Positions 22,200 through 64,000 of a DNA stretch of 64,000 bases are shown piece by piece. The stretch is from the sequence record MK250027.1. The stretch is one strand, 5' to 3'. A model generated the notes under the pieces. The model did no database searches and was not told the DNA's origin. It saw nothing but the letters and a program-made list of their open reading frames with translations. Position numbers and translations under genes: made by a program. Each line of letters starts with the position of its first letter. Position 1 is the stretch's first letter.

Positions 22200-22633
22200 N
22201 NNNNNNNNNNNNNNNNNNNNNNNNNNNNNNNNNNNNNNNNNNNNNNNNNNNNNNNNNNNNNNNNNNNNNNNNNNNNNNNNNNNNNNNNNNNNNNNNNNNN
22301 NNNNNNNNNNNNNNNNNNNNNNNNNNNNNNNNNNNNNNNNNNNNNNNNNNNNNNNNNNNNNNNNNNNNNNNNNNNNNNNNNNNNNNNNNNNNNNNNNNNN
22401 NNNNNNNNNNNNNNNNNNNNNNNNNNNNNNNNNNNNNNNNNNNNNNNNNNNNNNNNNNNNNNNNNNNNNNNNNNNNNNNNNNNNNNNNNNNNNNNNNNNN
22501 NNNNNNNNNNNNNNNNNNNNNNNNNNNNNNNNNNNNNNNNNNNNNNNNNNNNNNNNNNNNNNNNNNNNNNNNNNNNNNNNNNNNNNNNNNNNNNNNNNNN
22601 NNNNNNNNNNNNNNNNNNNNNNNNNNNNNNNNN
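22200..22633. other. Assembly gap
   Basis: 434 N. Confidence 1.
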
Positions 22634-42422: not shown

Positions 42423-43973
42423 TTATGTAATTTCTTTTCGTTTTTCAAGTATATGTTTTAATATTTCATATTCTGTATTCGCTATTTTCTTATCCATTTT
42501 TGCTGCTTTACGCAATGCAAAATAATGTGTAAGAATCGCAGGAACAACAGCATTTGGATCTTTTTTATAAACTGCGCCAGAACATGTTTTAATCTCATCA
42601 GATTTTGGGATATAATTCTTATCTTTGAATAAGAATGATTCAGGAGAAATTTGAAATTGTCTCATTATAGATGGATATAGTGACGCGAAATCTAATCCAC
42701 CTATATATTTAAATATTCCTGGTCTAGTTGGCCACACAAAAGCTCCAACATATTGATTATCAGTTAGTTCTGTGTTTTTATTAAATGGTTTTTCTGGTAT
42801 TACCTTATAATTTGGGTACACAAAGTTACACATAACAACATGTGTTGGTTGAATTGTAGAGAATGCGACATTTAGTTCAAGTCTCAATTCACATGCGAGC
42901 ATATACCAAATTTCAGCAGTCTTTAAGAATCTGTCTATATGTTCAACCAATATGGTATCGATGCAGTTATAGAAAACATATTCTTTGAAATGTTCTTCGA
43001 AGAATTCTTTGAATCCCCACGGGTGATTTACCTTCTTGATACCTAACGCTTTTTCTGCGACAAAATCAAGTGTATTATTTTCTTTTGGTTGGATAGTCAT
43101 GTCCCATGTTTTATAAACCAATAAGTAGTCATAAATTATTTTATGCATAGGGACTTTCACATTGATTGTTTTACCACCGGATCTTGGAGTAATCTTAAAG
43201 TTTGTGAATGTTCTTGTAGGAGAAATTCTTTCAATATCAATATTATTGATTTTACATCTATTATAGATATATAACCAGTCGAATCCTAGAAAATTCCATC
43301 CAGACATTGCAGGAATTGGTTCGATGAATGTTATATAGTCTTCAAGCATTTCCCGTTCTGTTGGAAAAAATCTGAATTCAAATTTATATCCTTTTGTAAT
43401 ATCTGATCCATTGTTTTCCTATGAATACTTATCGATTTGTTCTTGGACCCATTGTTGTTCTTCTAATGTTAAGTCTTTACGTGACCAAATGATAGTCCTA
43501 GGAAATTGTGTCATTGATATAGTATTGATACGAGTTGACGCTTCTTCTGGATCTGGAAATCCTTCATCTGAAACTTCTGTCTCAATATCACACCACCATG
43601 TTGGAGGAATATTCATTTCAAACAGAGGATCAACTGCATGTCCAAATGAATTAAGAATTTCATTTATTCTTAATTCAGGAAGTTTATCAACAGGATGCCT
43701 ACGAACCCATTTATTATCATAAGATTTCCATTGGTGCATAACAGGTGAACCGTCTGGATTAAACTTATAACATTTGTTTACAAAATCATATTCTTGAAAT
43801 GGAGGATCTGCATTTTGTCTGTTTGTATATTTCCATTCGAACATTGATTCTTTAGGAACAGGATATTGAAGGAATTTAACTTGTCCTTGTTTATCTATAT
43901 ATGATACTATTAATTTCTTTGTCGGTGTGCCATCAGGCAATAAATAATCTACCTATTCTTTATTAATTATCAT
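42423..43973 (-). CDS. polB: Family B DNA polymerase, N-terminal piece (exonuclease plus motif A), 516 aa (two TAG)
   Basis: Joins 43419..43940 and 42423..43349. WWCDIET (ExoI), GWNFLGFDW (ExoII), YNCID (ExoIII), DFASLYPSIM (motif A). Ends with TAA in the fingers helix. Confidence 0.9.
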
Positions 43974-47648: not shown

Positions 47649-48299
47649 TTAATAAATTCTACATTCAACTGATTGATCAACTTCTCTCTCCATACAATAA
47701 CTTGCAAAGAAATCAGCTTGCATAATCAACACTGACAAAGGAACTTTCTGATATGACTGTTGCATAGAAGGTTTTTGATAATTACTCATCCATGCTCCAA
47801 TATCACTCATACCCATATGCCACATTATAGCACACAATTCTTCACCACTCAACTTAATAAATGATTGCGCAATGAAAATAGACTTCGGTGCATGTCCAAG
47901 TGGAAGTTTCTCGTCTATCTTATATGAATAATACTTAATCCATTGGTTAGACTCATCTTTCTTAAACTTTTCATACATTACATAATTATTTGCTTTACAC
48001 AAATCATGTAACAATGCGCAAATAATTAATGAATCTTCAGAAATACTATCAATGTTTTTCTCTGGAAGTGCCAACTTTTTATATGTCTCTAAAAATCCTT
48101 TGGCCGCATAATATACATTCAATGAATGCTGACATAATCCTCCCGGATAATTACAATGATAAATCGTAGAAGACGGTGCTTCAAAGAAATCTGATTTCTC
48201 TGAAAGCCAACTAATCAAATTCTCAATACCTTCACGCTTTGTACTTCTAAGTAACTCAATAAATTCTTGTTTATTCTTCTCTTTTACTATTTGATCCAT
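47649..48299 (-). CDS. HD-domain hydrolase
   Basis: APSSTIYH...GGLCQHSLNV...LLHDLCK...GH...WHMG...QAD. Confidence 0.9.
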   Translation of the reverse strand: MDQIVKEKNKQEFIELLRSTKREGIENLISWLSEKSDFFEAPSSTIYHCNYPGGLCQHSLNVYYAAKGFLETYKKLALPEKNIDSISEDSLIICALLHDLCKANNYVMYEKFKKDESNQWIKYYSYKIDEKLPLGHAPKSIFIAQSFIKLSGEELCAIMWHMGMSDIGAWMSNYQKPSMQQSYQKVPLSVLIMQADFFASYCMEREVDQSVECRIY

Positions 48300-48452: not shown

Positions 48453-49058
48453 ATGAAATACGTTACTGCAAAAGAAGCAAAGAAATATTTTTAGATTTCA
48501 GGGTAGACACTAAAAACGTGGAAAGATTCTAATAAAATCTTAACGAAACAATTTTCATACAAGAAGATTTTGTATGATATTGATTCTGTAAATAATGATA
48601 ATGTTAATTTAAATAATAGAAAAAACGTAATATATGCACGAGTTTCATGTAGTAATTAGAAATAGTCATTAGATAATCAGATAGAATTAATTAAATCATA
48701 TATGATTTCTAATGGTATTAAAGTGGATGATATATATTCAGAAATTGCTTCTGGACTAAATGAAAATAGGAAAGAATTATCTAGATTAATTCATGATATA
48801 GATAATGAATAGATTAATACTGTATATATATCATTTAAAGATAGACTAACTAGATTTGGATTTAATTATTTTAAATCAATGTTTGAAAATCATGGAACTA
48901 AAATAATTATATTAGACGAAAATGAAGAAACAAATAAAGATTATAAAACAGAATTAGTTGAAGATTTAATATCTATTATACATCATTATTCTACTAAATT
49001 ATATTCAAATAGAAGGAAAGAATTGAAAGAAATAGAAAAAATTATAAAAAATGAATAA
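48453..49058 (+). CDS. tnpA: IS607-family serine transposase, 201 aa (five TAG; absent from track)
   Basis: N-terminal HTH (TAKEAKKYF..ISG.TLKTW), IYARVSCSN(TAG)K(TAG)SLDNQ, SEIASGLN, KDRLTRFGF, ELVEDLISII. Confidence 0.9.
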
Positions 49059-49107
49059 TTTTTAAAATAATTTAGATAAATATTATAAAGATTATAAAAG
49101 TTATAAA

Positions 49108-50457
49108 ATGCAAGTATTGAAGATTAAATATCAAACAGATGATTAGTCATTAGATATTATACAGGATTATATGAGACAATATAGTTCTGTATAGCATTTT
49201 GTATATAATAGAAATCAAGAAGGTAAATCATAGAAAGATATAAAATAGCAACTTAAATCTTTAAATAATGTAGATTTATTAGATAGTTGGTTTATTCAAT
49301 GTTCTTTCTATGATATTCCAAATAAAAATAATGTAATATTTGGTGGAAAGAAAAATTACTTTTAGAGATTAAAGAATAATATTACTAAAGAACAATTTAA
49401 ATAGAAACGATTATCAGCTATATATTCAATAGGTGAAGTAGTTAATAAATCAGTTAAAGGAAACAGAAAATTTCATATAGAACAAGATTTAGAAAATATT
49501 ACTTTCAAACCTAATAAATCTACTAAAATAAATTTACAACTTATAGGACTAAATAAACGTAAATAGATTCTATCAAAACTTTATTAGAAACAAGAACAAA
49601 AAGAAATAAAGATAGCTTATAAGTTAGACTTAGAATATGTTTATATAATATTTGATGAAACTAATATTTATAATTATAAAACTAAATTTATAAAGAATAG
49701 AGTTCTCTCATTGGATTTGAATCCTAATTATATAGGATGGAGTATTGTTAATTGGAAATCAGAATCAGAATTTGATGTAGTTAAATCTGGTATTTATTCT
49801 ATTAAAAAGTTAAATGATAAAGATTTTAATTTAAAGAATAAAGGGTATAGTTCTGAATCTAATGAAAGAAAATATATAAGTAATAAACGTAATTTTGAGA
49901 CTATATAGATAGTAAAGAATTTAATTAATAAAGCAATATATTATAAATGTCAATTAATTTCTATTGAAGATTTAAATATTAAATCAAGTGATAAAGTGTT
50001 TGGTAAGAGATTTAACAAGTTAGTTAATAATTCATGGTGTAGGAATACATTTGTAAATAATTTAATTAAACGATGTAATATATTCAATATAAAGTTATTA
50101 AAAGTTAAACCGGAATATAGCTCATTTATTGGTAACTTTTTATACCGTTCATTAAATTTACCTGATATGGTATTAGCGTCAATAGAAATTGGACGTAGAG
50201 GATATGAGTTTTATAATCAATATATAAGTAAAACTAAAGAGATAAAAAAGAATATAATTCAACCTGATTTAAATATGTATCAAAGGTTGTACCTTAAGTC
50301 ATTGGAAGAATTTAAGTTACAACCTACATACAAGGATTTGATTGGACTATATTACTTCTTCAAAAAGTCGAAACTTAAATATCGACTTTCTACAGATTAG
50401 TTTAATCTGTAGTTTTACAGATTTTATTCAAATGTAAGTTTAATTACATTTATATAA
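49108..50457 (+). CDS. tnpB: TnpB-related RuvC nuclease lacking the Zn finger, 449 aa (eleven TAG)
   Basis: VLSLDLNP (RuvC-I), ISIEDL (RuvC-II), PEYSSFIGN...PDMVLASIEIGRR (RuvC-III); joins 49711..49908 and 49996..50400. Confidence 0.85.
50371..50441 (+). ncRNA. Candidate omega/reRNA scaffold overlapping the tnpB 3' end
   Basis: Perfect hairpin CTACAGATTA-GTT-TAATCTGTAG nested in AAACTTA/TAAGTTT, at the position expected for TnpB guide scaffolds. Confidence 0.45.
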
Positions 50458-50541: not shown

Positions 50542-52047
50542 ATGAAAACTAAATTATTGATTTTTTTAATGTGTGCATTCAGTTTTATAGGATTTACTGG
50601 ATGTTCTACAGAAGTAGAGAACAACAACACTATCATTATTCCAGGTTATAATGGAACTGAGGTGGTGAAGACAGGTTCTAACTTACTTGTCAATGTTGGA
50701 GAAAATAAGTATGGTGAGAAAACACAAGCATTATCAAGAGTAAAAGCAATAACACGTGCATCCGTTGATAAATCAACTATTTCGATTACAACAGATGATC
50801 AAATCAATACACCTACAATTGGTTTGTATTCAAACTATGCATGGAATACTTACACTAATGGTCAGCAAATCTATGTTGGTGCAAGCAATGGTTATCTTTT
50901 TGCAACAACATCATTGACAACACCTTACAAAACCGAATGGAATGTTAATAATACCATAAGTAATGGTGTACTTACATTGACATCACAGATGTTGGATGAC
51001 AAATATGCTAAGCCTGTTCCTGTGACATTCTGGGGTAATCATTCATTAGTAACATCAAGTGTAGAAAAAACAATCTTTGATCCTAATGATAATGATTGGA
51101 AGAATATGGCAGTGACAAGTACAACAAAGTCTGTTGCTATCTCAAAGTCTATTGAATACGCAAATTCAGCTGTTAGAATGAATTTGACATTAGGAACAGA
51201 AGGTGTTCTTTGTTGGTATGACAAGTATGATACATCAAAAGATGAAGCTGATGTTACAACAGTAAAGATAACAGAAGATAATATCAATACTATGCCAACT
51301 TCTGAGACAAAGACTTATGAAGTAAATGGTAAACAATATAAAATTATCAATATTGATAATATTGGTAGCAAGACCGTAGGAAATTACTTGCATTACAAAG
51401 CAGGTTATGCTATAAAGATTGCACAAACGGACAAAGGTACAGGAAACTGGCACTTCATTGGTCCTAATGAATCAGATGACATCAACTATGAAGTTCTTGA
51501 AGCACGCATTGTTTCATCTAAATCTTGTACTTATAAGAATGAATATCAATATGAACCAAGTTCAGATGAAGTTACTTATAAGTATGAGTTGAATGAATCA
51601 CTTCAATCAGGTGAGAATGCAGTATTCTCTATTATGCCAACATCAGAAAAATCATCTGTTGTCGTTTTGAAATGTAAAATCACAAAATTCCCAACGCAAG
51701 ATCATGATAGATTCCTTTGGTATATCAAAGAATCAATAAAAGATAATTCACCTTACATAAAAGTTGGTGATAACTCTACATTCTATATCATTGGAAAGAT
51801 TTCAACATCTGACAAGACAATACCTACAGGTTCACCTTACTCAACAACATGGAACAAAGGTATTTATTGTCCTGATGTAATAACTAATGTAAATGTACAT
51901 ATTGATGATCTCACGGTAAATGGTTCCGTTGTAGTTGATCCAGATGGTTCAGATGAAACAGATATTAATAAGATACATTATAATTTCGATTATGAATATG
52001 GTACTATGGATGGTGTTTGGACAACAGGAAATACAACAAAACATTAA
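50542..52047 (+). CDS. Bacteroidota lipoprotein, possibly fimbrillin (type V pilin)-like
   Basis: 501 aa, lipobox FTGC, ITRA motif after the N-terminal segment, Thr/Ser-rich beta content, higher GC, no TAG. Confidence 0.6.
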   Translation: MKTKLLIFLMCAFSFIGFTGCSTEVENNNTIIIPGYNGTEVVKTGSNLLVNVGENKYGEKTQALSRVKAITRASVDKSTISITTDDQINTPTIGLYSNYAWNTYTNGQQIYVGASNGYLFATTSLTTPYKTEWNVNNTISNGVLTLTSQMLDDKYAKPVPVTFWGNHSLVTSSVEKTIFDPNDNDWKNMAVTSTTKSVAISKSIEYANSAVRMNLTLGTEGVLCWYDKYDTSKDEADVTTVKITEDNINTMPTSETKTYEVNGKQYKIINIDNIGSKTVGNYLHYKAGYAIKIAQTDKGTGNWHFIGPNESDDINYEVLEARIVSSKSCTYKNEYQYEPSSDEVTYKYELNESLQSGENAVFSIMPTSEKSSVVVLKCKITKFPTQDHDRFLWYIKESIKDNSPYIKVGDNSTFYIIGKISTSDKTIPTGSPYSTTWNKGIYCPDVITNVNVHIDDLTVNGSVVVDPDGSDETDINKIHYNFDYEYGTMDGVWTTGNTTKH

Positions 52048-52069
52048 TTATTAAGTTATTATAAAATTA

Positions 52070-52103
52070 AAAGGAATATAAACAACTAAGTTTATATTCC
52101 TTT
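52070..52103. terminator. Bidirectional terminator
   Basis: AAAGGAATATAAAC/GTTTATATTCCTTT. Confidence 0.8.
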
Positions 52104-52109
52104 ATTTTT

Positions 52110-52370
52110 TTACTTATGACTTTCAATTTCTTTATTAATATCATCAATAGAAACAAGTCCCACCCATTTCTTTAATTCTTCACCATTATCACCTTCCAAT
52201 ACAATAACAGGAACATTTCTGATATTATACTTATCAATAACTGCAGATGTTTCATCATCTTCATCATCTACATCATATTTCTTTAATTCACATGTATTAA
52301 AGTTTTCCAACCTCTTATCCATTACATTACATGGACCACACCATGTAGCACCTACTTTAATTAATCTCAT
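52110..52370 (-). CDS. trxA: Thioredoxin
   Basis: ATWCGPC active site; IRNVPV cis-Pro loop. Confidence 0.9.
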   Translation of the reverse strand: MRLIKVGATWCGPCNVMDKRLENFNTCELKKYDVDDEDDETSAVIDKYNIRNVPVIVLEGDNGEELKKWVGLVSIDDINKEIESHK

Positions 52371-52388
52371 ATTATTTAAAAATTATTT

Positions 52389-52817
52389 TTACCAACATTC
52401 ATAATCTGTAATATCTTCAGAATCACCATTTTTGTTACATACAATACGTATACAGCTACCAATACCAGTTCCTCCTTCAATAAACGAAAATGGAAGCTTA
52501 TATTTACTTTTTACATTCCAATTATCTTTATTGTAATTCGTAACATCTTCAGATTCATTACATGTTTCACATACATATGTATGGCTAAAACCACAATTCC
52601 ACATATCAATTAAATATACAGAACCTCTACCACCATTGCACACTGCTTTATGCTTTACATAAAAATTATGTGCATTCTTTTTCTCTATATCATCCATTTC
52701 AGTAAATCCATGATTATCTTTCAATAATGCAATAGATGTGATACAAGACTGTGTACCAACATCATTCTCATGTTTATTAATAAATGATATAGACATTTCT
52801 AATTCTTTATCTGTCAT
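52389..52817 (-). CDS. Hypothetical Cys-rich protein
   Basis: 142 aa; CETC and an internal duplication (EDVTNY/EDITDY). Confidence 0.75.
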   Translation of the reverse strand: MTDKELEMSISFINKHENDVGTQSCITSIALLKDNHGFTEMDDIEKKNAHNFYVKHKAVCNGGRGSVYLIDMWNCGFSHTYVCETCNESEDVTNYNKDNWNVKSKYKLPFSFIEGGTGIGSCIRIVCNKNGDSEDITDYECW

Positions 52818-52905
52818 CTTATTAAAATTAATTCAATATTTTATATTATATGAAAAAAGGTAAGATTTGTTTCTTAATCTTACCTTTATATTTTATTTAC
52901 TATTA

Positions 52906-53880
52906 TTACCAAAGTGCGGCTGTATAACATAAGTTAGATGTTAATGTAGTATAACCAATAATAGATATAATTCTATTACAAGGTTCAAGAATCATTTTTT
53001 CAAATTGTTTATCATAATCTATTTCAGGTGCATATTCTATTGGATAAGCGCCAGGTAAAAATGCAAAACAATCATAATTTCTATCCTTTGCATAATACCA
53101 CTTAACTTTATCTGCTGTCTTAATAGGATTATACTTTACCTTATATTTCTTATTCTTTGGTTGATTCAAAATAAAGTTAGCAATTCCTGAAGCCTTAACC
53201 TGAATAGGACAATGTTCTCCGAATACCAACTTATTCTTATCATCAAGAACGAACTTTTGATAATTTCCTATTGAACTACCTTTTGAAATCTCTGATGGAT
53301 CTTTAAACATAAACTGTTGTTTATATCCCTTTATTTTCGCAATAATATCTTCATATGGTGGTCTTTCCTTATGTTCCTGATACCAATGCAACATATAACA
53401 TGTAAAGTCTTTTTGACATTCTCTTGCAAATGGTGGTGTAGAACCTTGAACGATCTCAAGTCCCTTATAAACGACTTCTTCCATTTGCTCCAAGAAAATA
53501 TTAGGTTCCTTAAAACACTCTGCCATTGCATAATGTTTCTTTGAAGTCAAGATAGTTGTATCTGCAATTTTCTCTAACTCAAGATTTTGAATATTTACAT
53601 CACAATTATATTTCTTTGCATATTCCTCATATTTCTGTTGCATATATGGTCCACAACCATAATTCCAAAGATCAACAACAAATTGTGCACATTTAGACTC
53701 TGGAATATCAAGCTGTTGACAAATTCTTCCAAATTCTACATATATTGAGTTGTGAGCCAGTATCTCATTTGCGAAGAATGTATGAGTATCATCTACCTCA
53801 ATATCATATACATACTCATCATTAAAATCTTCAAGTTGCTCTATTACATCAATATCCTCTACTTGTATATTGTAATTCAT
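52906..53880 (-). CDS. polB: PolB C-terminal piece fused to a 44-aa C-intein
   Basis: MNYNIQVEDID...VYDIEVDDTHTFFANEILAHN|SIYV..., then LELEKI, SKKHYA, YKGLEIV, CPIQVKAS, DKVKWYY. Confidence 0.92.
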   Translation of the reverse strand: MNYNIQVEDIDVIEQLEDFNDEYVYDIEVDDTHTFFANEILAHNSIYVEFGRICQQLDIPESKCAQFVVDLWNYGCGPYMQQKYEEYAKKYNCDVNIQNLELEKIADTTILTSKKHYAMAECFKEPNIFLEQMEEVVYKGLEIVQGSTPPFARECQKDFTCYMLHWYQEHKERPPYEDIIAKIKGYKQQFMFKDPSEISKGSSIGNYQKFVLDDKNKLVFGEHCPIQVKASGIANFILNQPKNKKYKVKYNPIKTADKVKWYYAKDRNYDCFAFLPGAYPIEYAPEIDYDKQFEKMILEPCNRIISIIGYTTLTSNLCYTAALW

Positions 53881-53956
53881 CTTTTTTCTCCTATTATTAA
53901 TTGTGTATTTTCAACATTATTAAAATGTTCTAATATATAATTATATAAATAATTTT

Positions 53957-54432
53957 TTATATTGTTTTTATATCTTCTCTATCTTTATGTGTTTTATAGA
54001 ATATCCAGTTATCAATAAAATATGGATAAATGAATAACATATTTAATTTATTATTTTTGCATCTTCCCATTTTTGAATATCAGTTTCTGTCCATGTATGA
54101 ATTAATCCATCATAATTATTTTTCGTATTTGTTTTAGAACATTTACTTAAAAAATAATTATACTTATCTTTATCTAATTCTTTATTATATAAACATTTAT
54201 TATGCCAAAATGATCCTTGATACTCTATATATAAATTATACTGTTTTATATAAAAATCACAATTATGATTATATTCTTTTGTTTTATAACATCTTATAAC
54301 ATCATCACCATATAATTCATTTAAAAAAACATATAAAATTTCTTCTTCAATAGATGTATGCTTATTATAAGATTCTGTGACTTTATCTTGTATTTCTGAT
54401 AACTATGAAATATAATCATCATCTATTACCAT
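53957..54432 (-). pseudogene. Vsr/DUF559-like endonuclease domain with a frameshift at the A5 run (54054-54058)
   Basis: CDFYIKQYNLYIEYQGSFWH...WTETDIQKWEDAK; the conserved NNKLNMLFIY continues only in the -1 frame. Confidence 0.6.
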
Positions 54433-54731
54433 ACTAAATTATTATGTTCATTTTCATAATTCTTTTCATTATAACAACACTCATCGAATTTTTTCACTTT
54501 TTCTATATATTCATCTATAATATCAATACCTAAATATTTTGCATATATTATTTTTGCATCTGATATATCACATTTATCATTCATTGTAATACAATTAACA
54601 TTATTATTCAATGCAAAGTATATATCTTTATATGTTGATATTATTTGTTTTAGAAAATATTTTAATAACGTATTATGTTTCTTAAACATATTATTCCTTA
54701 TAATCCTTATTTTTGAACGATAATATATCAT
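54426..54731 (-). CDS. Hypothetical protein, possibly N-terminal fragment of the degenerate endonuclease
   Basis: 101-aa ORF overlapping both neighbours. Confidence 0.45.
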   Translation of the reverse strand: MIYYRSKIRIIRNNMFKKHNTLLKYFLKQIISTYKDIYFALNNNVNCITMNDKCDISDAKIIYAKYLGIDIIDEYIEKVKKFDECCYNEKNYENEHNNLVW

Positions 54732-55846
54732 ATTTCAGTTATATCATTTAATTGATCTTTATTATTAATCATCTATATAAGTGATTTTATAGTTCCTTTC
54801 TTATCATTTTTATATGTAGATTCCCAAACTATTATAACCTTGCAATTCAATGTCTGTTGAATATCTTCAATTCTTTCTCTATCATGATTCCATTTATCTT
54901 TAACTGAACGTCCGTTTCTTAATATAAAATAATTTGTTTCATTAGCATTATATTTCTTTGGATTAAAATGATAAAAATCTCCATAAAATTCTATAACAAT
55001 ATTTAATGATTTATCGTAATAATCTACATGATAAAAATTATTATTTAATAACTTAACTGTATATTCTATATAAGTATCATTATCTTTATAATATTCTTTT
55101 AAATGAGAAAATAACTCTAATGATATATTTGACTTATTACCTATTAAATAATATTGTTCTGAACGTTTTTCTACAAATTCATTATATTTTTGTGTTCCAT
55201 CTTCTTTACCGTATTCTTCGATAAAATAATCTAATGTACATGTATATCTCTGACGTTCGATATAAGCATTCCATATTTTTAAACCATCTATTTCACCATG
55301 TCTTTTAATAAGATTTTCCTTTGTTACCGCTCTAGATTTATTGTATTCATCAAATTTATCTTGAGACATACCATATTTTTCATGTTTATATTCATATGTA
55401 TTTGTAACTGATTGTTTATTACAATATGAATTCCATTTTTCTAATCCTATATCTTTTCCATATCGTTTAATCATTTTTTCTTTGGTAACACATTGTCTTT
55501 CTTTTGCTACAGGGTTGAAATCCTTATCAGGTACTCCAAATCCATACTACGTATATTTTGCAGCTTTATGCGCAAATTTAAATTTTACATCTTTAAAATT
55601 TGGAAATTTCTTGCATACACAATCATAACACCTACATAAATGATATTCATTACCATTATAATTTCTAGTACTTAAAAATGATAACTTATTATTATCACAT
55701 ACTATTTTATGTGTTTTTGAGTTTATATGAAATGTACCATTATCATATATAAGAAATTTACCACATTCTTTACAATAACATATTGATGGATCTATATTAT
55801 TATCTTTACAATATTGAACTACGTTCTATTCACTTAAATATTTCAT
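54728..55846 (-). CDS. Free-standing Vsr-like homing endonuclease, 372 aa (three TAG)
   Basis: ATG overlaps the TAA of the Pol N-intein gene. Cys motifs, KYG repeats, HVDYYDK...IVIEFYGDFYH...IIVWE. Confidence 0.8.
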
Positions 55847-56658
55847 TATCTATCTAATGTTATAATTTTATCAGATTTTTTTATTTCTCTTGCAGGAACA
55901 GATATTAATTCATTATTTCGTATAACCATTATACTATGATCACCTGTAACTATAAGCTCTTTACCGGATTTAGTTTTTAACCTAAACTTATCTTTAGTTA
56001 CTTTATGTCTCATTATATAATTAATCGGTCGTGTAATAGTTTTATAATCATGATCCTTATATGATAATGTATCGTGATTATGTACAGGAATGACTTCAGA
56101 CCCATTTTGTAATTTTATAACAACATCGTCATTTTCATATTTTGCTTTAGTAAAAAAGCCTTCCATTGAAAATACTTTATTATCTATAACTACTTGAGTA
56201 TCAGCAGTTTGCGAATCCGTATCCCCCGCTACAGTTAGTGATTGGTTTCCATCAAGATACGAAAACTCGGGTCCGTCCAACGTACCTGTTTCAGTTGTCT
56301 TACCTTTTGCGATACTTACTCGTTTTGCTTTCTCCGAATCAATACCAAGTTTCTTATGCAATTCTGTATCATTCTGAAATATACCACTGAAATACGCGTT
56401 AACAGAATTCTCAGAATAATGGTTCAAATCCTGACCCTGAAGAGTAATAGACTCTGCAACTGCTGTGTTATGCGCAATGAAATACTTGCTCGCAGTTGCT
56501 CCATAAACACTATTGATAAATTTCTTTAACGCTAGCTGTTTAGTCTCATAAAAATCCCCTAAATTTTTTAATCTTTCTACTTCTTTTTCAAGTTCTTCAA
56601 TACTGCAATTCTCAGGGTCTACTTGGCAAAATTTATAATTCTTATGTTGTTCTTCCAT
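55846..56658 (-). CDS. polB: PolB middle piece (motifs B and C) fused to a 122-aa N-intein
   Basis: KQLALKKFINSVYG (motif B), AGDTD|SQTADTQV...VTGDHSIM (intein block B), TAA stop. Confidence 0.92.
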   Translation of the reverse strand: MEEQHKNYKFCQVDPENCSIEELEKEVERLKNLGDFYETKQLALKKFINSVYGATASKYFIAHNTAVAESITLQGQDLNHYSENSVNAYFSGIFQNDTELHKKLGIDSEKAKRVSIAKGKTTETGTLDGPEFSYLDGNQSLTVAGDTDSQTADTQVVIDNKVFSMEGFFTKAKYENDDVVIKLQNGSEVIPVHNHDTLSYKDHDYKTITRPINYIMRHKVTKDKFRLKTKSGKELIVTGDHSIMVIRNNELISVPAREIKKSDKIITLDR

Positions 56659-56682
56659 TTTATTCTAATTAACGATTTAATT

Positions 56683-56711
56683 ATTATACAAATAAAAATT
56701 CTATTTGTTTA
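56683..56711 (-). promoter_or_regulatory. Class II promoter TAAACA-N17-TATAAT
   Basis: Upstream of the polB middle gene. Confidence 0.6.
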
Positions 56712-56747
56712 TTAAAAACATTATTAACAATATTTAATATAAGATAT

Positions 56748-58406
56748 ATGGAAATTACAGATCAAATTATAATAGATAAGTTAACAGTATTTAGACATAA
56801 TAAAATACAATTAAATACATGTAGAATAAAAGAAACATGGTTAAAAGATCATGGTTTATATGAGTATTTAATTAATAGATTTAAAACCATAGATAATATT
56901 CAAGAAATTATATATAGGATATATTATAAATTACCGGATAATTTACAGTTACATTGTAATACTTGTGGTAATGAAATACCTTTACAATTTAGAGGATTCT
57001 TATATGGATATAATCAATATTGTTCTTATAAATGTTCTTTAAATGATCCAAATAAAATACATAAATTAACAAATGTAAAACAAAAAGATGATATAGATGA
57101 TAATTATGTATTGAATTTAATGATTAAAGACAATAGATTAGTTTCAGAATATTGTAAGAATAAAAAACTTAAGCAATTTGGTATATATGATTATATGATG
57201 AATAGATATGACGATTTACAGAAAAATAAATCTATTATTCAAGAAATTATATATAGAATGAAATATCATATAGATAAATCTCCTCGATGTCCAACATGTG
57301 GGAAATATGTTAACTTTTATAGATTTAGTGAAGGATTCAGACATTATTGTTCAAATGAATGTGCAAATAAGAATGAAAATAATGTTAACATAAAATTAAA
57401 TAATAAGCATAAAACTATAGAAAATAAATGGTTAAACCGTGGATATAAAATTAAATATACAGAAAATAAAAATGAATTTCTTGTATATAATCAATGTAAT
57501 TTACATAATCCATTTAAAATTAAAAAATATACATTCTTTAATAGACAAGGAAAAGATATAATTATGTGTCCTATTTGTAATCCTGAAAAAAATATGGAGA
57601 CTTCTATAGAATATAAAATTAGGTTAATATTAGAGAAACATAATATAAAATTTACGCAACATGTTAGGTATATAATATCACCAAGGGAATTAGACTTTTA
57701 TTTACCTGCTTATAAAGTAGCAATAGAATGTAATGGGATTTATTGGCATTCAGGGATAAACGGTAAAAATAGATTTAAAGTTAAATATGAACTATTATCC
57801 AAAACTGATATATAGATGTTAACTTTTTGGGAAGACGATATTCATTATAACATTGATAAGATAGAAAATATCATATTAAGAAGTTGCAATTTAGAAAAGA
57901 AATTATTTTCAAATGATACTGTTATTAGAGAAATAGATATTGATATATGTAAGTCATTTATTAATAATAACTCAATTAAAAAATATATTATATCTAATAT
58001 AAATTTAGGTTTATTTAAGGATGATAAATTATTATTTGTTATGACATTTTCAAATAATAATGATAATAATTATACATTAAATCAAATATGTTATAAAGAT
58101 AATTTATATGTTATAAATTCTGAAAAATTATTATTATATTATTTTTTTAATAATTATAAATTTAATAAATTGATAACATATTGCGATTTAAAAATTGAAA
58201 ATAATAAATTATATGAAAAATTAGGATTCAAATTAAATAGTGATAAATTAAAATTTAATCTGAATTATTATAATTATAGAACAACTGAACATAGAATTAA
58301 TAAGAAAGAAGTTAATCAATTATTGAAATTAGATGATTCTGATTCATTAGAAGATTATATGAAATGTTATTCAGGATATTTAATATATGAGAAAGAGAAT
58401 GTATAA
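56748..58406 (+). CDS. Vsr/DUF559-like homing endonuclease, 552 aa (one TAG)
   Basis: Joins 56748..57815 and 57816..58406. Two YLINR..QEIIYR-CxxC repeats, ELDFYLP...AIECNGIYWH, LTFWED. Confidence 0.85.
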
Positions 58407-58430
58407 TTTAAATTTATATACATTCTCTTT
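58392..58430. terminator. Bidirectional terminator between convergent endonuclease genes
   Basis: AAAGAGAATGTATA/TATACATTCTCTTT. Confidence 0.75.
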
Positions 58431-59634
58431 TATTATTTTCTAAATATTCATTTATTATAGTTTTTATTATTTCTATCTTATTGCTCCATATAGGAAGATA
58501 ATTCAGATTATTCATTTTCGCAGTTTGACATTTAAAAGGATCAATGATTGACCAAACATTTACAGCAGATTTATATTGTTTTGATATTTCTGCTTTTTGT
58601 TTCCACTTATTTAATAAATCAATATCATCTTTATTATCTTCATCAAATAAATGTTTCCCATGTGTCCAAAATGCGTTTATCTCTATAAATAAATCTAATG
58701 GTTTTATATAGAAATCTACATGGAATGGATAACGCTCATCAACATTTACATTAAACTATATATCATCTTTATCAAATATTGTTTGTAAATATTCATATGT
58801 TTGATATTCTGGTTTTGACATACCAAAATTATCTTTATATTTTTTCTTTATTGTTTTTACATATTGATCAAACTAATATTGATGAAAATTTTCTAATGAA
58901 CCATATTTTTTAATAACAGTTTCTTTTGTCTTTTCTTTATTATTAAATGTTGGATCCCCATATAATTCTAATTTTGTTTCTTTAATTTTGTTTTTTATTT
59001 CTTCATTTTTTGCAGGGTTATCAACGCCATATTTTTTAATAACAGTTTCTCTTGATTTTTCTTTATTATTATCTGACTAAAAACTATATTTACACCCATA
59101 TTTTTTTAAACATGTATTAATTGATTTCTATTTAACTTCTTCATTCTATCCTGAAAATTCTACANNNNNNNNNNNNNNNNNNNNNNNNNNTGTCTTCTAT
59201 AAATATTCCGATGTTTTTGTATATGATGAAACTCCATATTTTTCTAAACATGTTTGTTTTATTTTATCTTTAACTGATTTTAACTACATTTGATGTTCAA
59301 CACCATATCGTTCTTTTAATGTATTTTTTATTTTATTCTATACATTAACTGAATTCATTACACATCGTGAATTTGAACAAAATTTACGAAATCCTCTACT
59401 ATAACAATTAAATCTCACAGGTTTCCCACATGTTTCACATACTGGTCTTATTTCTATTTTATTTACAATACGGTATATTGTCTCCTATATAGATTCGCTA
59501 TCATTATATCTATTAATTAAATAATCATAAATATCTTGATGTTTATTTAACCAAGATAATCTTGTATAATTTTTTGCTAACTAATTCTTTTTTGTTATAA
59601 ATTTTTCTTTTATGTAGTCATCATTAATAATCAT
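58414..59634 (-). CDS. Vsr-like homing endonuclease with KYG repeats (many TAG; spans a 26-N gap; absent from track)
   Basis: YLINRYNDSESI(TAG)ETIYRI, CETC, TCLEKYGV repeats, YPFHVDFYIK...FIEINAFWTH...AKMNNLNYLPIW. Confidence 0.8.
59165..59190. other. Assembly gap
   Basis: 26 N inside the KYG repeat region. Confidence 1.
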
Positions 59635-59675
59635 ATCTAATAATAAATTATTATTATTTTTAATTATATAAAAAA

Positions 59676-59718
59676 TGAGGTAAATAGTTTTTAACAGAAT
59701 TAAAACTATTTACCTCAT
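59676..59718. terminator. Terminator after the RecA C-terminal gene
   Basis: 17-bp inverted repeat ATGAGGTAAATAGTTTT/AAAACTATTTACCTCAT. Confidence 0.75.
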
Positions 59719-59725
59719 TAATATA

Positions 59726-60463
59726 TTAATTAATACTTGCTTCTTTTATAGGATCTTCATCATTATCATTTTCATCTGAAATACCCATTGTTTCCTCTAA
59801 ATCTTTAACATCATCAAATGCAGATTGATCTGGTAATTGGAACATTGGGTGAATAACATGCTCATTTATATAATCAAGATATTCTGGTGTAAATACCTTA
59901 TCAGACCAAAATTCAGTAAAAGGAACTTGTTCATTAAGATGTTTTACTACAATATACCTTGCTGTATCTTTCGGTAAACAATAATGTGTTTCACCATCAT
60001 CTGTTGTCCATGTATATACTTTCTTTTTATCTGAATCTGATAATTTATCATATTCTTTTTGCGTAAGTAAATTTCCTCTACAAACACCTGAATTGTCCCA
60101 TGTCATAAATTGTTCCAAACCAACATATGGGTTAGGTTTTTTAAAATATGGAATTTGAAATTTCACTTTAATTGGTCTGCAAAAACGAGACTTAACTGGT
60201 TTTGCTGTAACTAAAACACCATTCTTTGTACCTGCATCAGAACCTTGTCTTGATTTTGCAGCTGAATCATTCTCTTTATCTTCCAGTTTAGCAGCACTTA
60301 ATTCAATTGTAATTGATGCATTATATACAATACCTGAATTATGATTTATAATACCATTTGCAGAAACATAATTATGTGTGTCTTTAACTGTTAAATCTAT
60401 TACATCCTCACTTAATTCTGACTATATCTTCTTTACAATCTTTAACTTTCTATATTTCATCAT
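59726..60463 (-). CDS. uvsX: RecA/UvsX C-terminal piece fused to a 42-aa C-intein (TAG at codon 14)
   Basis: MMKYRKLKIVKKI(TAG)SELSEDVIDLTVKDTHNYVSANGIINHN|SGIVYNASITIEL...KSRF, in frame with track ORF 59726..60166. Confidence 0.9.
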
Positions 60464-61790
60464 TTATATATTGCGTTATTTTTTTATATTCTAAATATTT
60501 AAAAACTGTTTCTGAAATTCTAACAATACCTAATACATTATTATCTATTAATAAAATATCATTATCTCTTTGCTTATCCAATTCTTCCTAATGAAATACA
60601 CCTTGTCCACCATCATATTCAAATATAATTATTTTACCTTTATATTCTAAATACCCATCACATGCATAAAATATTTTATTTCGTGTTTTATCTGATATTT
60701 CATCTGGAATTATTACTATATATGGTTTATGAATGATTTTCTTATCGATATATTTTTGTAAAAATTCAAAACATCTATTTTCTGATTCTGATATATTTGT
60801 CATCCAGCCACCTTTTATTTTACATAAAAAGTTATCACTATGTTTCCAATTTTTCCAAATATTTTTTGCTAAATTTGATTGTAATTCTTTTTTCTTTAAA
60901 TAATCTTCATATGATTTATAACCTTTATATTCCTCACATGATGGATTAATTTCATGCACTTTTAATTTAGCTTCATCATCAGAATATCCTAACTTCTTCC
61001 AATAATTAAACGTCCATACACTATGTTCTTTTGCATAATATGAAGCTTTCTTTTTTGCATCCTCTATAGTTAGCCCTAAATTTAACCAATATTTTGTTGT
61101 GCTTTTAGAACATGTTGAATTATTCTATTGAACTTTACTTACTTCTATTTTTGCGTCTTCTAATGTATAACCTTTATTTAACCAATATTCAACACAACGC
61201 GGTGATCTATTTTTATTTAATTCTCGTATAATTGATTCTGCTTCAGTATCACTATATCCTCGTGCTAAATAAAACGATTTACTACTTTTAATATATCCTT
61301 TATTCTACTTATCAGGATAATATTGTTTACACCAAATCATTAACTAATCATTAATATCTCGTTCTGTTATAAAATCAGAAAATGTTATGAAATTTATAAA
61401 TCTTTTAATAAAAGAAATATTATTCAAATTAAATGAATATTTATTATCTTTAATGAATGAATTAAATATATCATCTTTATTAAAATATACAACTGTCTTT
61501 TTATACTTATTTAATATAATTTTTTTATATTCATCAAATGAATATCCTCTAACATCCCAATATAAAAATGTTGTATTTTTATGTTTATTTGTAATATTCT
61601 TTAAATAATTTAATAATATATCTATTATTTCTTGAGAGCCATATACTTTATTTTCGCTAAATAACTATTGTAACTTATTAATATACTATGTATTATTTGT
61701 ATTAATATTAAAATTATAAAACTTATTATATTTGTTTATAAACTATATAAACTCATTTATATCAAATACATTTATTTCTACTTTTTTCAT
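60408..61790 (-). CDS. Free-standing Vsr-like homing endonuclease, about 460 aa (many TAG)
   Basis: Read-through ORF with YW-x-x-KGY repeats and CDGYL...IFEYDGG...FH; overlaps the C-intein start and ends in TGA. Confidence 0.8.
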
Positions 61791-61885
61791 ATTAAACATT
61801 TCAAATTTTTGATTATTTTATACCTTATAATATTTATTCATATATAAAGTAAAAATAATCAAAAATTAAAAAATATTTTATGGTA

Positions 61886-62860
61886 TTATTCAGAAATTGC
61901 ATAAATTTCATCATTTTCATTTAATTCTGAAACTATTTTCCATGAGCTATCCAACTCTGGTTTATCAGGATTAATAAGAAATCTATGTGTATTTGAACAT
62001 GTAATAGTCTCTCCATTATCAAATGTAAATGTATATGTCGGTTTTTTAAAATGCCAAAGTTTCTCTACATCATGATATTCACCATCATGTGACAATACTT
62101 TATCTCCAACAACAACATCTTTCATTTGTTTAATTCCATTATTTGTAATAATTTTTTCATCTGGTCGTAAACAACCCATTGCTTGTATATTCTGAGGAAT
62201 AAATGACATAGATTGATATACATGGTTCACTACAATCCAAGGAATTTGCAATTTTGCAATTGGAGTAGCACAAACTCTAAACATTGCTTTAGTATCTTTT
62301 GCTTTTGTAAAATCTGCTTTTTGTGAACCTGACAATGTATCTTCACGTTCCTTTTCAGATGTTAAATTTCCGAGAGAATCCAATACAATAATAACTTTAT
62401 CATGTTGACCATACTTATCTTGTTGTTCTTGCAATTTATCACATAAATTTGCAATAAATTGGCTTGTCTCCATAATTGTATTAACTTTTTTAATAATTAA
62501 TTTAGATGGATCTACTCCAAGACGCCTAACAAAATCAGAATCTATTGCACCTTCAGAATCAAGATAAATTGGAATATAACCTAATTTTTGAGCTTCCCTA
62601 CAACATGAACATGCTAAAAAAGATTTACCAGCGCCAGATGTACCCGAGAACGTTACAACTCTACCAGTCGGTATTGCTTTATAAATATCACCTGAACAAC
62701 ATGCATTTAAAATATAATTACCTGTTGAAATCCATTCTTTTATATTTGAATACGCTGAATCTGCAATAATTTCAGCTTGATCATCTATACTACTTACCAT
62801 TGACATTAATGAACCAATACCACCTTCAAAATCTTCGCTTGACTACTTTTTCTTTGCCAT
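61886..62860 (-). CDS. uvsX: RecA/UvsX N-terminal piece fused to a 95-aa N-intein (TAG at codon 6)
   Basis: ISTGNYILN, GTSGAGKS (Walker A), YLDSE, IVLDS (Walker B), VNHVY, QAMG|CLRPDEKI...TCSNTHRF, TAA stop. Confidence 0.92.
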
Positions 62861-62892
62861 AATATTAAATTACGTTAATTTTTATTTTATAT

Positions 62893-62921
62893 ATTATATA
62901 TGTTTTTTATTAATTTGTTTA
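62893..62921 (-). promoter_or_regulatory. Class II promoter TAAACA-N17-TATAAT
   Basis: Upstream of uvsX(N). Confidence 0.6.
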
Positions 62922-62987
62922 GAAAATAATAGCATCTAAAATTAATTTCTAATCTTAGATGCTATCTTATATTTAAGCTATAATAAA

Positions 62988-64000
62988 TTACATAATACCT
63001 CCAAGAACATCATCAAGACTCATTCCTGCTGCTGGATTTGTAGGAGCTGATGGAGCTGGTGCACCTGCATTCAAAATAGAATCAAGTTCTCCTGTACCTA
63101 CACCAGGAATATTAGCAGCATTAAAACCACCAGGAGTTGTCTGATTCATTGATGTAGCATCACTACCCATTTCAAGACCTGTTGCTGGTGCAGATGGAAT
63201 AGGATTTGCCGGAATTCCTGGACTTACCTGCGGTTGCATAGCTGGTTGCATATAAGGATTTGCTGTAGACATTGCTGCTGGTTGCATACCGGTTGCAGCT
63301 TGCATTGAAGCCTGAGGATTTGTATAAATCTTAATACATGAATTAACAAAATTAGTTGTTTCCTGTGTCCATGCATGATACTCATAAGGTTCAAGTGAAG
63401 GACAATTCTCCTTAAGATATGTAAGAATTGTAGGTTTAATATCTGGATTTGATTCAATTACTTGCTGAGTAATTGGTTGCCATGTCTCCTGACCTTGTGC
63501 ATTCTTAACCTGAATACGAAGAGCGCCATCTGCTGGTTGAAGATCAATAAACTGTGAATCATCAAAGTTATTGAAATTAGACACCAACTTACACTTTACA
63601 TAAAATGGACGTCCAACAAACATATTAAATGGATTTCTTGGAGTTCCCATAGGTGGATTCATCTCATTGTAAATCTTCTCATGAATCTTGATACCATAAC
63701 GCCATACAAGAATCTTACCTACCAACTGAGGTTCTGACTTACATGAAAGAATCTGTACAAGTGAAGCATAACGCTGACGACGTGAAAAATGCTTTGAATT
63801 TTCTTTAAGAACAGGATTCTCACTATTACGAAGTGCAAAGAATGTATCCTGTAGAATATCTGGTTGACCAATTGTAGATGGACAATCAACTTCCATCTGT
63901 GCATTTGTCAAAGGATTCTTAAGGAATACTGTATTCTTAGAAACGATAGATTTATTTGAAGGATCCTCTGGATTTGGAATAAAGCGAATTACTGCATCAT
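62988..64000 (-). CDS. Single-stranded DNA-binding protein, T4 gp32-like (5' end outside window)
   Basis: AVIRFIPNP...VDCPSTIG...RRQRYASLVQI...GKILVWRYGIKI...NFNNFDDSQF; acidic/hydrophobic tail LDDVLGGIM. Confidence 0.85.
   Translation of the reverse strand, partial: DAVIRFIPNPEDPSNKSIVSKNTVFLKNPLTNAQMEVDCPSTIGQPDILQDTFFALRNSENPVLKENSKHFSRRQRYASLVQILSCKSEPQLVGKILVWRYGIKIHEKIYNEMNPPMGTPRNPFNMFVGRPFYVKCKLVSNFNNFDDSQFIDLQPADGALRIQVKNAQGQETWQPITQQVIESNPDIKPTILTYLKENCPSLEPYEYHAWTQETTNFVNSCIKIYTNPQASMQAATGMQPAAMSTANPYMQPAMQPQVSPGIPANPIPSAPATGLEMGSDATSMNQTTPGGFNAANIPGVGTGELDSILNAGAPAPSAPTNPAAGMSLDDVLGGIM

Follow-up and report, generated by a model that had tools for sequence, protein, structure and literature searches.

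A predicted Cys-free split intein in the three-piece family-B DNA polymerase of Lak megaphages

Lak phages are "megaphages" with genomes of ~540–550 kb, assembled from baboon and human faeces (GenBank records). The window analysed here is a 64,000-nucleotide (nt) stretch of sequence record MK250027.1. Positions 52906–56658 of this window, which hold two parts of a family-B DNA polymerase (PolB) gene, are 100% identical to Prevotella phages Lak-B7 and Lak-B8, 99.2–99.4% identical to other Lak-B genomes and 82–87% identical to Lak-A1, Lak-A2 and Lak-C1. Lak PolB is very probably made as three separately translated polypeptides, with the second and third (pieces 2 and 3) joined by a class 1, Cys-less Ser1/Ser+1 split intein at DTD·S in motif C, where the dot marks the extein–intein or extein–extein junction. 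Protein trans-splicing of the two Lak halves is the most likely way in which this junction is sealed. The reading is supported by homology to a solved trans-splicing intein, intact splicing motifs, selection on both halves, an intein-less allele, the lack of an RNA intron signal and a prediction of the complex.

Polymerase pieces and intein halves

In Lak phages TAG is a glutamine codon (code 15), and their genomes carry genes for a CUA suppressor tRNA and for RF2 (Devoto et al. 2019, PMC6784885). The recoding is visible in the window and TAG is read as Gln here because the endonuclease open reading frames (ORFs) stay open only under that reading, TAG codons face CAA or CAG of other Lak clades at five aligned sites, and residue 2 of the Lak-C1 intein is a TAG (L003 ~10856) at a position where the other clades have CAA. 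A tRNA scan of the 64-kb window found no CUA suppressor tRNA; the published genomes encode one elsewhere.

The three pieces tile the PolB profile phrog_262 once, at positions 116–500, 497–569 and 581–840 (Table 1). Piece 1, located by a search of the whole Lak-B7 record, contains Exo I (DIETE), Exo II, Exo III and motif A (DFASLYPS); it matches phrog_262 with an E value of 2.8e-67 and also matches NCBIfam Pol II/PolB models. The 270-amino-acid (aa) protein that contains piece 2 begins at about position 497 of this 856-position profile, and piece 3 matches with an E value of 5e-30. No further PolB copy was found in the whole-record search of Lak-B7. The genes for pieces 2 and 3 are separated by a gap of 1,965 nt. 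An original prediction, made from the window's letters, had placed the polymerase in two halves; its split intein pair stands, but the gene taken for the first half encodes the middle piece, and the first ~516 aa of the enzyme are found in a separate gene.

The break between pieces 1 and 2 is of a different kind. Piece 1 ends in ...ILEKRKEIT after motif A and piece 2 starts with MEEQHK... before motif B, and no intein motifs occur at the C-terminus of piece 1 or at the start of piece 2. It is a plain gp43A/gp43B split, as known from T4-related phages (Petrov and Karam, cited by Dassa et al.). In Lak-B, piece 1 is found ~9 kb downstream of piece 3. It is 224–229 kb from the other pieces in Lak-A1, Lak-A2 and Lak-C1, and on the opposite strand in Lak-A1; RNA-level joining of this break is inconceivable. 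The differing distance, ~10 kb from pieces 2 and 3 in Lak-B, is a large rearrangement between Lak clades. An in-frame TAG at codon 7 of piece 1 (43953–43955) is kept in Lak-B, Lak-A1, Lak-A2 and Lak-C1, and the corresponding residue is Gln in Tenacibaculum phage PTm1; together with the TAG in the Lak-C1 intein, this indicates that the replicase itself needs TAG suppression. To the catalytic centre, piece 1 would contribute motif A, piece 2 the DTD, and piece 3 the next strand and the thumb. The earlier proposal that the active site forms only by trans-splicing is supported as far as motif C is concerned, but it needs to be widened, since a third, unlinked polypeptide with motif A is also required and joins without an intein.

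The N-intein (IntN) follows piece 2 and the C-intein (IntC) precedes piece 3. IntN scores 32.9 bits against the NCBIfam model intein_Nterm TIGR01445 (curated cut-off 24.5), and IntC scores 29.2 bits against intein_Cterm TIGR01443 (curated cut-off 15.6). Both halves also match the solved intein 9HTH in the PDB, IntN over residues 2–119 (E 6.6e-12) and IntC over residues 143–170 (E 2.1e-4). The 44 aa of IntC read MNYNIQVEDID...VYDIEVDDTHTFFANEILAHN, followed by SIYVEFGR of the C-extein, and an AGGAG lies ~9 nt upstream of its ATG.

P0019, a metagenomic relative of 425 aa, is encoded by an uninterrupted gene and is 81–85% identical to both exteins: the piece 2 N-extein is 84.6% identical to its matching part, and piece 3 is 80.8% identical to the residues downstream of DTD. 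Across the junction it reads ...TVAGDTDSIYVEFGR... (AGDTDSIYV), and the stretch ...NGNQSLTVAGDTDSIYVEFGRI... fixes the extein junction to the residue. The intein is not a chance resemblance, because both curated cut-offs are passed, both halves match 9HTH and P0019 is intein-less. The N-intein at the end of the upstream gene, the 44-aa C-intein with its own Met and the restored motif C (GDTD-SIY) were thus all correctly called in the original prediction, and the comparison with hidden Markov models that it proposed comes out above the curated cut-offs.

Seven IntN/IntC pairs were aligned, from Lak-B, Lak-A1, Lak-C1, Lak-A2, PTm1, Aeromonas salmonicida phage Aes123 and the huge-phage assembly LR756500. 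Conserved throughout are Ser1 after DTD, the His of the NX motif ((R/K)H), the N3 motif T.DHS, the C2 motif VYDIE and the terminal HN·S. The NX motif has been described (PMC10189870); IMRH of Lak-B aligns with IMKH of Aes123. A Ser1 nucleophile, a TxxH motif (VTGDHS) and a C-terminal His-Asn followed by Ser+1 place the intein in class 1. Neither IntN nor IntC of Lak-B contains a Cys.

Ratios of nonsynonymous to synonymous substitution rates (dN/dS), calculated for Lak-B against Lak-A1 or Lak-C1 at synonymous rates (dS) of about 0.8–1.0, are 0.12–0.14 for IntN, 0.08 for IntC and 0.04–0.05 for the exteins. For HEG1, the homing endonuclease gene (HEG) that follows IntN, the ratio is 0.18–0.30. 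These values indicate that IntN, IntC and HEG1 are under purifying selection. The halves also differ in charge: IntC has a net charge of -13 and the last 62 residues of IntN one of +8. Such charge segregation drives "capture and collapse" assembly in natural split inteins (PMC11923092). Modelling of residues 141–270 of the 270-aa protein together with residues 1–54 of the 324-aa protein predicts an IntN–IntC complex with an ipSAE of 0.81, against 0.00 for the best control. Contacts agree by at least 91% between runs and the partner pLDDT is at least 72. In a benchmark, 51 of 78 solved complexes and 2 of 108 mismatched pairs attained this ipSAE mark.

The halves might instead only dimerise, or have lost splicing, so that the polymerase would be a non-covalent three-subunit enzyme. 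Piece 1 certainly joins without an intein, and there are precedents for phage enzymes whose fragments stay associated in other ways, such as Aeh1 NrdA (PMC3045599). Even so, this is an improbable account: all splicing residues are kept in the Lak clades, PTm1, Aes123 and LR756500, the dN/dS of both intein halves is low, and a 166-aa Hint domain left between DTD and S would occupy the catalytic centre.

Under the trans-splicing reading, the basic C-lobe of IntN would capture the strongly acidic IntC after translation, and the pair would fold into a Hint domain. This domain would excise itself through oxyester intermediates, and the new peptide bond (...AGDTD-SIYVEF...) would complete the palm. 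The ligated product of pieces 2 and 3 should be ~428 aa long, with a junction peptide that spans AGDTDSIYVEFGR. Piece 1 would associate without a covalent bond, as happens in T4-related phages whose gene 43 is split.

Table 1. Features of the PolB locus, followed by neighbouring features (window positions; TAG read as Gln)
Feature	Position	Strand	Description
PolB piece 1 (gp43A-like)	42423..43973	-	516 aa, two in-frame TAG (Gln); Exo I–III and motif A; intein-free
Gene for piece 2 and N-intein	55846..56658	-	270 aa; ...LTVAGDTD·SQTADTQV...VTGDHS...KIITLDR, then TAA
PolB piece 2, N-extein	56215..56658	-	148 aa, motif B (KKFINSVYG) to motif C (AGDTD)
N-intein (IntN)	55849..56214	-	122 aa; Ser1, NX motif (MRH), N3/B motif (VTGDHS), Cys-free; TAA stop at 55846..55848
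HEG1, putative free-standing homing endonuclease gene	54728..55846	-	372 aa, three TAG (Gln); ATG overlaps the piece 2 TAA (TAATG)
orf101	54426..54731	-	101 aa (80 aa in Lak-A and Lak-C); between HEG1 and the C-intein gene
HEG2, Vsr-like ORF	54043..54432	-	129 aa, one TAG; only in Lak-B
Gene for C-intein and piece 3	52906..53880	-	324 aa; MNYNIQVEDID...FFANEILAHN·SIYVEFGR
C-intein (IntC)	53749..53880	-	44 aa; own ATG, C2/F motif (VYDIEVDD.TH), ends in AHN, Cys-free
PolB piece 3, C-extein	52906..53748	-	280 aa plus stop; Ser+1 (SIYVEFGR) onward, rest of palm and thumb
IS607-family element	48453-50457	+	serine-recombinase transposase, 171.7 bits on NF033518 (cut-off 110), 5 TAG
Thioredoxin-like gene	52110-52370	-	86 aa, just downstream of PolB piece 3; below-cut-off match to TIGR01068
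HEG4	56748-58406	+	552 aa, 1 TAG; phrog_559/3339; Vsr model match below cut-off
HEG3	58414-59634	-	406 aa, 10 TAG
UvsX C piece	59726..60463	-	42-aa C-intein (...IINHN·SGIVYNAS) and C-extein of 203 aa
UvsX spacer ORF	60408..61799	-	463 aa, endonuclease-like, 8 TAG
UvsX N piece	61886..62860	-	N-extein of 229 aa and 95-aa N-intein (...QAMG·CLRPDEK, Cys1)
gp32-type single-strand DNA-binding protein	62988-63998	-	upstream of UvsX; phrog_224

The endonuclease-bearing spacer

Read with code 15, the spacer between the intein halves contains the 372-aa HEG1, orf101 and HEG2 in place of shorter ORFs under table 11. The IntN gene, HEG1 and the IntC gene all lie on the minus strand with the endonuclease between the halves, which is the arrangement that defines a fractured gene. 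The split point is where contiguous inteins hold their endonuclease domain; here HEG1 is free-standing and translationally coupled, and it would cut HEG-less or intein-less alleles.

HEG1 has 29–31% identity to the genes annotated as "VSR endonuclease" that occupy its place in PTm1 and Aes123, and it shares with these proteins the motifs D...E(F/Y)xGDxxH...W..D...VW(E/D), of a type described for Vsr-like homing endonucleases by Dassa et al. HEG1 is thus a likely member of the Vsr family by its sequence. HEG2 matches the vsr model TIGR00632 with an E value of 1.2e-4, below the curated cut-off. The label "Vsr-like", first proposed for the endonucleases of the ~2-kb spacer, rests on homology to annotated VSR proteins; the direct matches to Vsr fall below threshold.

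The spacer content varies between clades. HEG1 is cleanly absent from Lak-A2, whose spacer of ~355 nt still holds the 80-aa version of orf101 (orf80), and HEG2 is absent from Lak-A1, Lak-C1 and Lak-A2. No Lak clade has lost orf101 from its place between the endonuclease and the C-intein gene, even where HEG1 is missing, and the Lak-A and Lak-C version is 64–66% identical to that of Lak-B. It has no NCBIfam family, PHROG or ESM Atlas match.

An alternative explanation is that the ~2 kb of the spacer is a self-splicing intron, or lies inside one, and that the mRNA encodes a contiguous cis-splicing mini-intein. Gut jumbo phages and phage polymerase genes often contain group I introns with endonuclease ORFs (PMC12880540, PMC7824862), and contiguous mini-intein alleles occur in the relatives P0118 and P0120. 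The evidence at the locus makes an intron highly improbable. A search of 52000–63000 on either strand returned no Rfam intron match at E ≤ 1, with a chance small nucleolar RNA (snoRNA) hit at E 0.59 as the sole match. The conserved TAA of IntN overlaps the start codon of HEG1, IntC starts at a conserved ATG of its own that is preceded by AGGAG, and purifying selection acts on the conserved ORFs that fill the spacer. In Lak-A2, orf80 is still found inside a spacer shortened to about 355 nt, and the homologous halves of Aes123 function as separate polypeptides.

Alleles, known relatives and points of doubt

Among the best 120 clusters of relatives, the site is empty in about 30, a contiguous mini-intein occurs in two (P0118 and P0120) and most have a split intein, with about 86 of the 120 best cluster representatives being split C pieces that end in HN·S. 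All three stages of the intein/endonuclease cycle, namely empty, contiguous, and split with or without an HEG, are thus present in close relatives.

Within the Lak phages, variation is concentrated at one side of the split. The flanks of Lak-A1, Lak-A2 and Lak-C1 are 98–100% identical, and the three do not differ at all in IntC, orf80 and the C-extein. The sequences diverge sharply from ~38 nt upstream of DTD·S, across IntN and HEG1, to the HEG1 stop. IntN identity is 88.5% between Lak-A1 and Lak-C1 and 59.8% between Lak-A1 and Lak-A2; for the latter pair, dS is 1.30 in IntN and 0.12 in the adjacent extein. This pattern is the footprint of cassette exchange with co-conversion at a homing site. 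IntN and HEG1 behave together as a mobile cassette, exchanged or lost among near-identical Lak genomes, which implies that one IntC serves several IntN alleles.

The closest known system is the PolB1 intein of Aes123, a T4-like A. salmonicida phage; this naturally split, Cys-less intein is the one in 9HTH (PMC11923092, PMC13014065). It consists of an IntN of 120 aa and an IntC of 39 aa with Ser1, Asn159 and Ser+1, trans-splices in vitro, and has been engineered into CL and CLm (PMC11923092, PMC13014065). Its GenBank record lists gp43A, gp43B1 ("includes putative N-intein"), a "putative VSR endonuclease" and gp43B2 ("includes putative C-intein"). Like the Lak intein, it is inserted at DTD·S in motif C of PolB, is split at the endonuclease site, uses Ser1 and Ser+1, is Cys-free, and has the NX His, a homologous VSR-type endonuclease gene between its halves and a separate gp43A piece. 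The sizes are similar (IntN 122 aa and IntC 44 aa in Lak-B), with identities of 33% for IntN and 51% for IntC. The genomes differ, since the Lak host genome is that of a ~550-kb code-15 Prevotella megaphage. The three pieces of Aes123 are contiguous and overlapping, whereas piece 1 lies apart in Lak-B, and the Lak-B spacer has the 101-aa ORF and a second Vsr-like ORF in addition. Splicing was shown in vitro for Aes123 and is predicted for Lak.

PTm1, also a phage of Bacteroidota and grouped with Lak-B8 by Iyer et al., has a three-piece PolB like that of Lak in ORF-236/239/240/241, with a C piece that starts with IntC (HN·S). These ORFs are annotated as DNA polymerase, "intein-containing split DNA polymerase precursor", "VSR endonuclease" and DNA polymerase. 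Its IntN and IntC are 39.5% and 50% identical to those of Lak-B, and a single Cys occurs in its IntC. The genome of PTm1 is read with the standard code, and its pieces are ordered on one strand with two unrelated genes between pieces 1 and 2. In LR756500 the intein is split too, with another endonuclease, of the HEG4 type, in the spacer.

The "fractured genes" of marine metagenomes (Dassa et al. 2009) comprise gp41, NrdA/J, IMPDH, DnaE, ligase and terminase, among others. As in Lak, these loci have adjacent split halves with a free-standing, often Vsr-like endonuclease between them and a Ka/Ks below 1, and locus gp41-7 is without an endonuclease, like Lak-A2. PolB and UvsX are not among the eight fractured enzyme types in that study. 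CP21 PolB1, LCGC14 PolB2, GOM-OPS-1 PolB2 and PolB16 OarG are, like the Lak intein, PolB-type split inteins with Ser1/Ser+1 from phages or metagenomes. The first three each have one non-conserved Cys, in contrast to the Cys-free Lak halves. PolB16, found in a sheep gut metagenome, shares the SGDTD· N-extein but has an atypical split (IntN of 15 aa), as opposed to the canonical one of Lak. Nanoarchaeum equitans Neq Pol is likewise a family-B polymerase with its halves on separate genes and a Cys-independent, oxyester-type split intein. It is archaeal and thermophilic, however, has its halves at distant loci without an endonuclease, and is not among the PDB matches of the Lak intein.

The Lak intein is thus a new member of the already characterised Aes123 split-intein family and not a new kind. 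The original prediction of a new Ser1 split intein holds in this narrower sense. Its comparison with marine fractured genes captured the endonuclease genes between the halves, but the closest cases, Aes123 and PTm1, lie beyond marine metagenomes.

Some observations count against the trans-splicing account. IntN alleles of ~60% identity are paired with an identical IntC in Lak-A1 and Lak-A2, which would require cross-compatibility. The Aes123 N-fragment is only ~30% efficient in vitro because of its aggregation (PMC11923092). The score of the predicted IntN–IntC complex may in part reflect the model's memory of solved inteins and speaks of likeness, which is not proof of binding. The relation of HEG1 to solved Vsr is weak: Vsr ranked first in PDB searches with the single sequence and with a 5-sequence profile, but at E 0.5–0.9, and its structures were the only profile matches, at E about 0.6; matches to spike proteins in one of these searches are noise. 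No RNA run carrying the locus was found. The DNA contigs that cover the locus, from four runs of one study, are fragmentary, short and of low depth.

These contigs nevertheless match at 100%, show no alternative joints and bridge the junction at 55846, and they give no sign of the assembly artefact that would have refuted the original prediction. They also bear on the remaining alternative, in which the locus is a mis-assembly or a PolB pseudogene decaying through endonuclease insertions. The sequence does come from metagenome assembly, and five HEGs and an IS607/TnpB element lie within 15 kb. This alternative is nonetheless scarcely credible: all 15 Lak genomes that were curated by hand, of baboon or human origin, share the split architecture, as do dozens of independent clusters from metagenomes; the extein dN/dS is 0.04–0.05 at a dS of about 0.9, and the genome yielded no second PolB.

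Neighbouring genes, TAG usage and implications

A second fractured gene lies at 59726–62860 on the minus strand and encodes a UvsX/RecA-like recombinase with a Cys1 split intein that passes the NCBIfam intein cut-offs. UvsX is uninterrupted in relatives in L007 and L016. A literature search pairing "UvsX" with "split intein" found no described UvsX split intein. HEG3 and HEG4 sit between the UvsX C piece and PolB piece 2. HEG4 adjoins PolB piece 2 in Lak-A1 and Lak-A2 as well, where it is full length and 76–77% identical, and a partial copy is found in Lak-C1 (81% over the first 237 aa). Two runs of N occur in the window, one of 434 bases at 22200–22633 (masked or an assembly gap) and a masked one at 59165–59190 inside HEG3.

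The IS607-family element lies between the block of PolB pieces 2 and 3 and piece 1 in Lak-B. The transposase is followed by a 449-aa ORF with 11 TAG, which is called TnpB-like because of this position; its match to TIGR01765, a model of a transposase N-terminal domain, is weak and below the cut-off (E 1.7e-4; 21.5 bits, cut-off 47.25). The gene order near the element differs in Lak-A1, where an HD-like gene (47649..48299 in the window) is upstream of HEG4.

TAG usage separates the mobile genes from the replication genes. Across 13 genes at 42423–63998, the mobile genes (five HEGs, IS607 and TnpB) contain 39 TAG against 67 CAA/CAG, and the six replication gene pieces (three of PolB, two of UvsX and the single-strand DNA-binding protein) contain 4 TAG against 86 CAA/CAG (Fisher p about 1e-8). 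The skew is consistent with the TAG-poor and TAG-rich genome regions reported by Devoto et al. (PMC6784885), and it looks as though the mobile genes have adapted to the recoded state or are gated by it.

Taken jointly, the allele pattern and the TAG bias raise a tentative and rather doubtful possibility. The mobile unit may be an IntN+HEG half-cassette, and not the intein or the endonuclease alone, that is recombined against a fixed IntC; this IntC would have to trans-splice IntN alleles of ~60% identity, and HEG translation would possibly be gated by the code-15 switch. If this were true, Lak phages would hold a natural panel of cross-reactive, fully Cys-free split-intein partners.

The Lak GenBank records carry no features, and the C piece of a relative is named only "DNA polymerase". 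No mention of an intein in Lak phages was found in the literature searched, and neither "intein" nor "DNA polymerase" occurs in Devoto et al. 2019. Interest is added by the three-piece, partly unlinked polymerase, the Cys-free halves, the polymorphism of the IntN+HEG cassette, the UvsX split intein and the TAG bias of the mobile genes. As protein-engineering tools, Cys-less split inteins able to function at ambient temperature are in short supply, with only four counted as usable (PMC13014065), and the Lak family offers many natural, fully Cys-free variants, including several IntN alleles per IntC. The split state dominates the clade, and the essential replicase of the largest gut phages would depend on three-piece assembly and protein trans-splicing.

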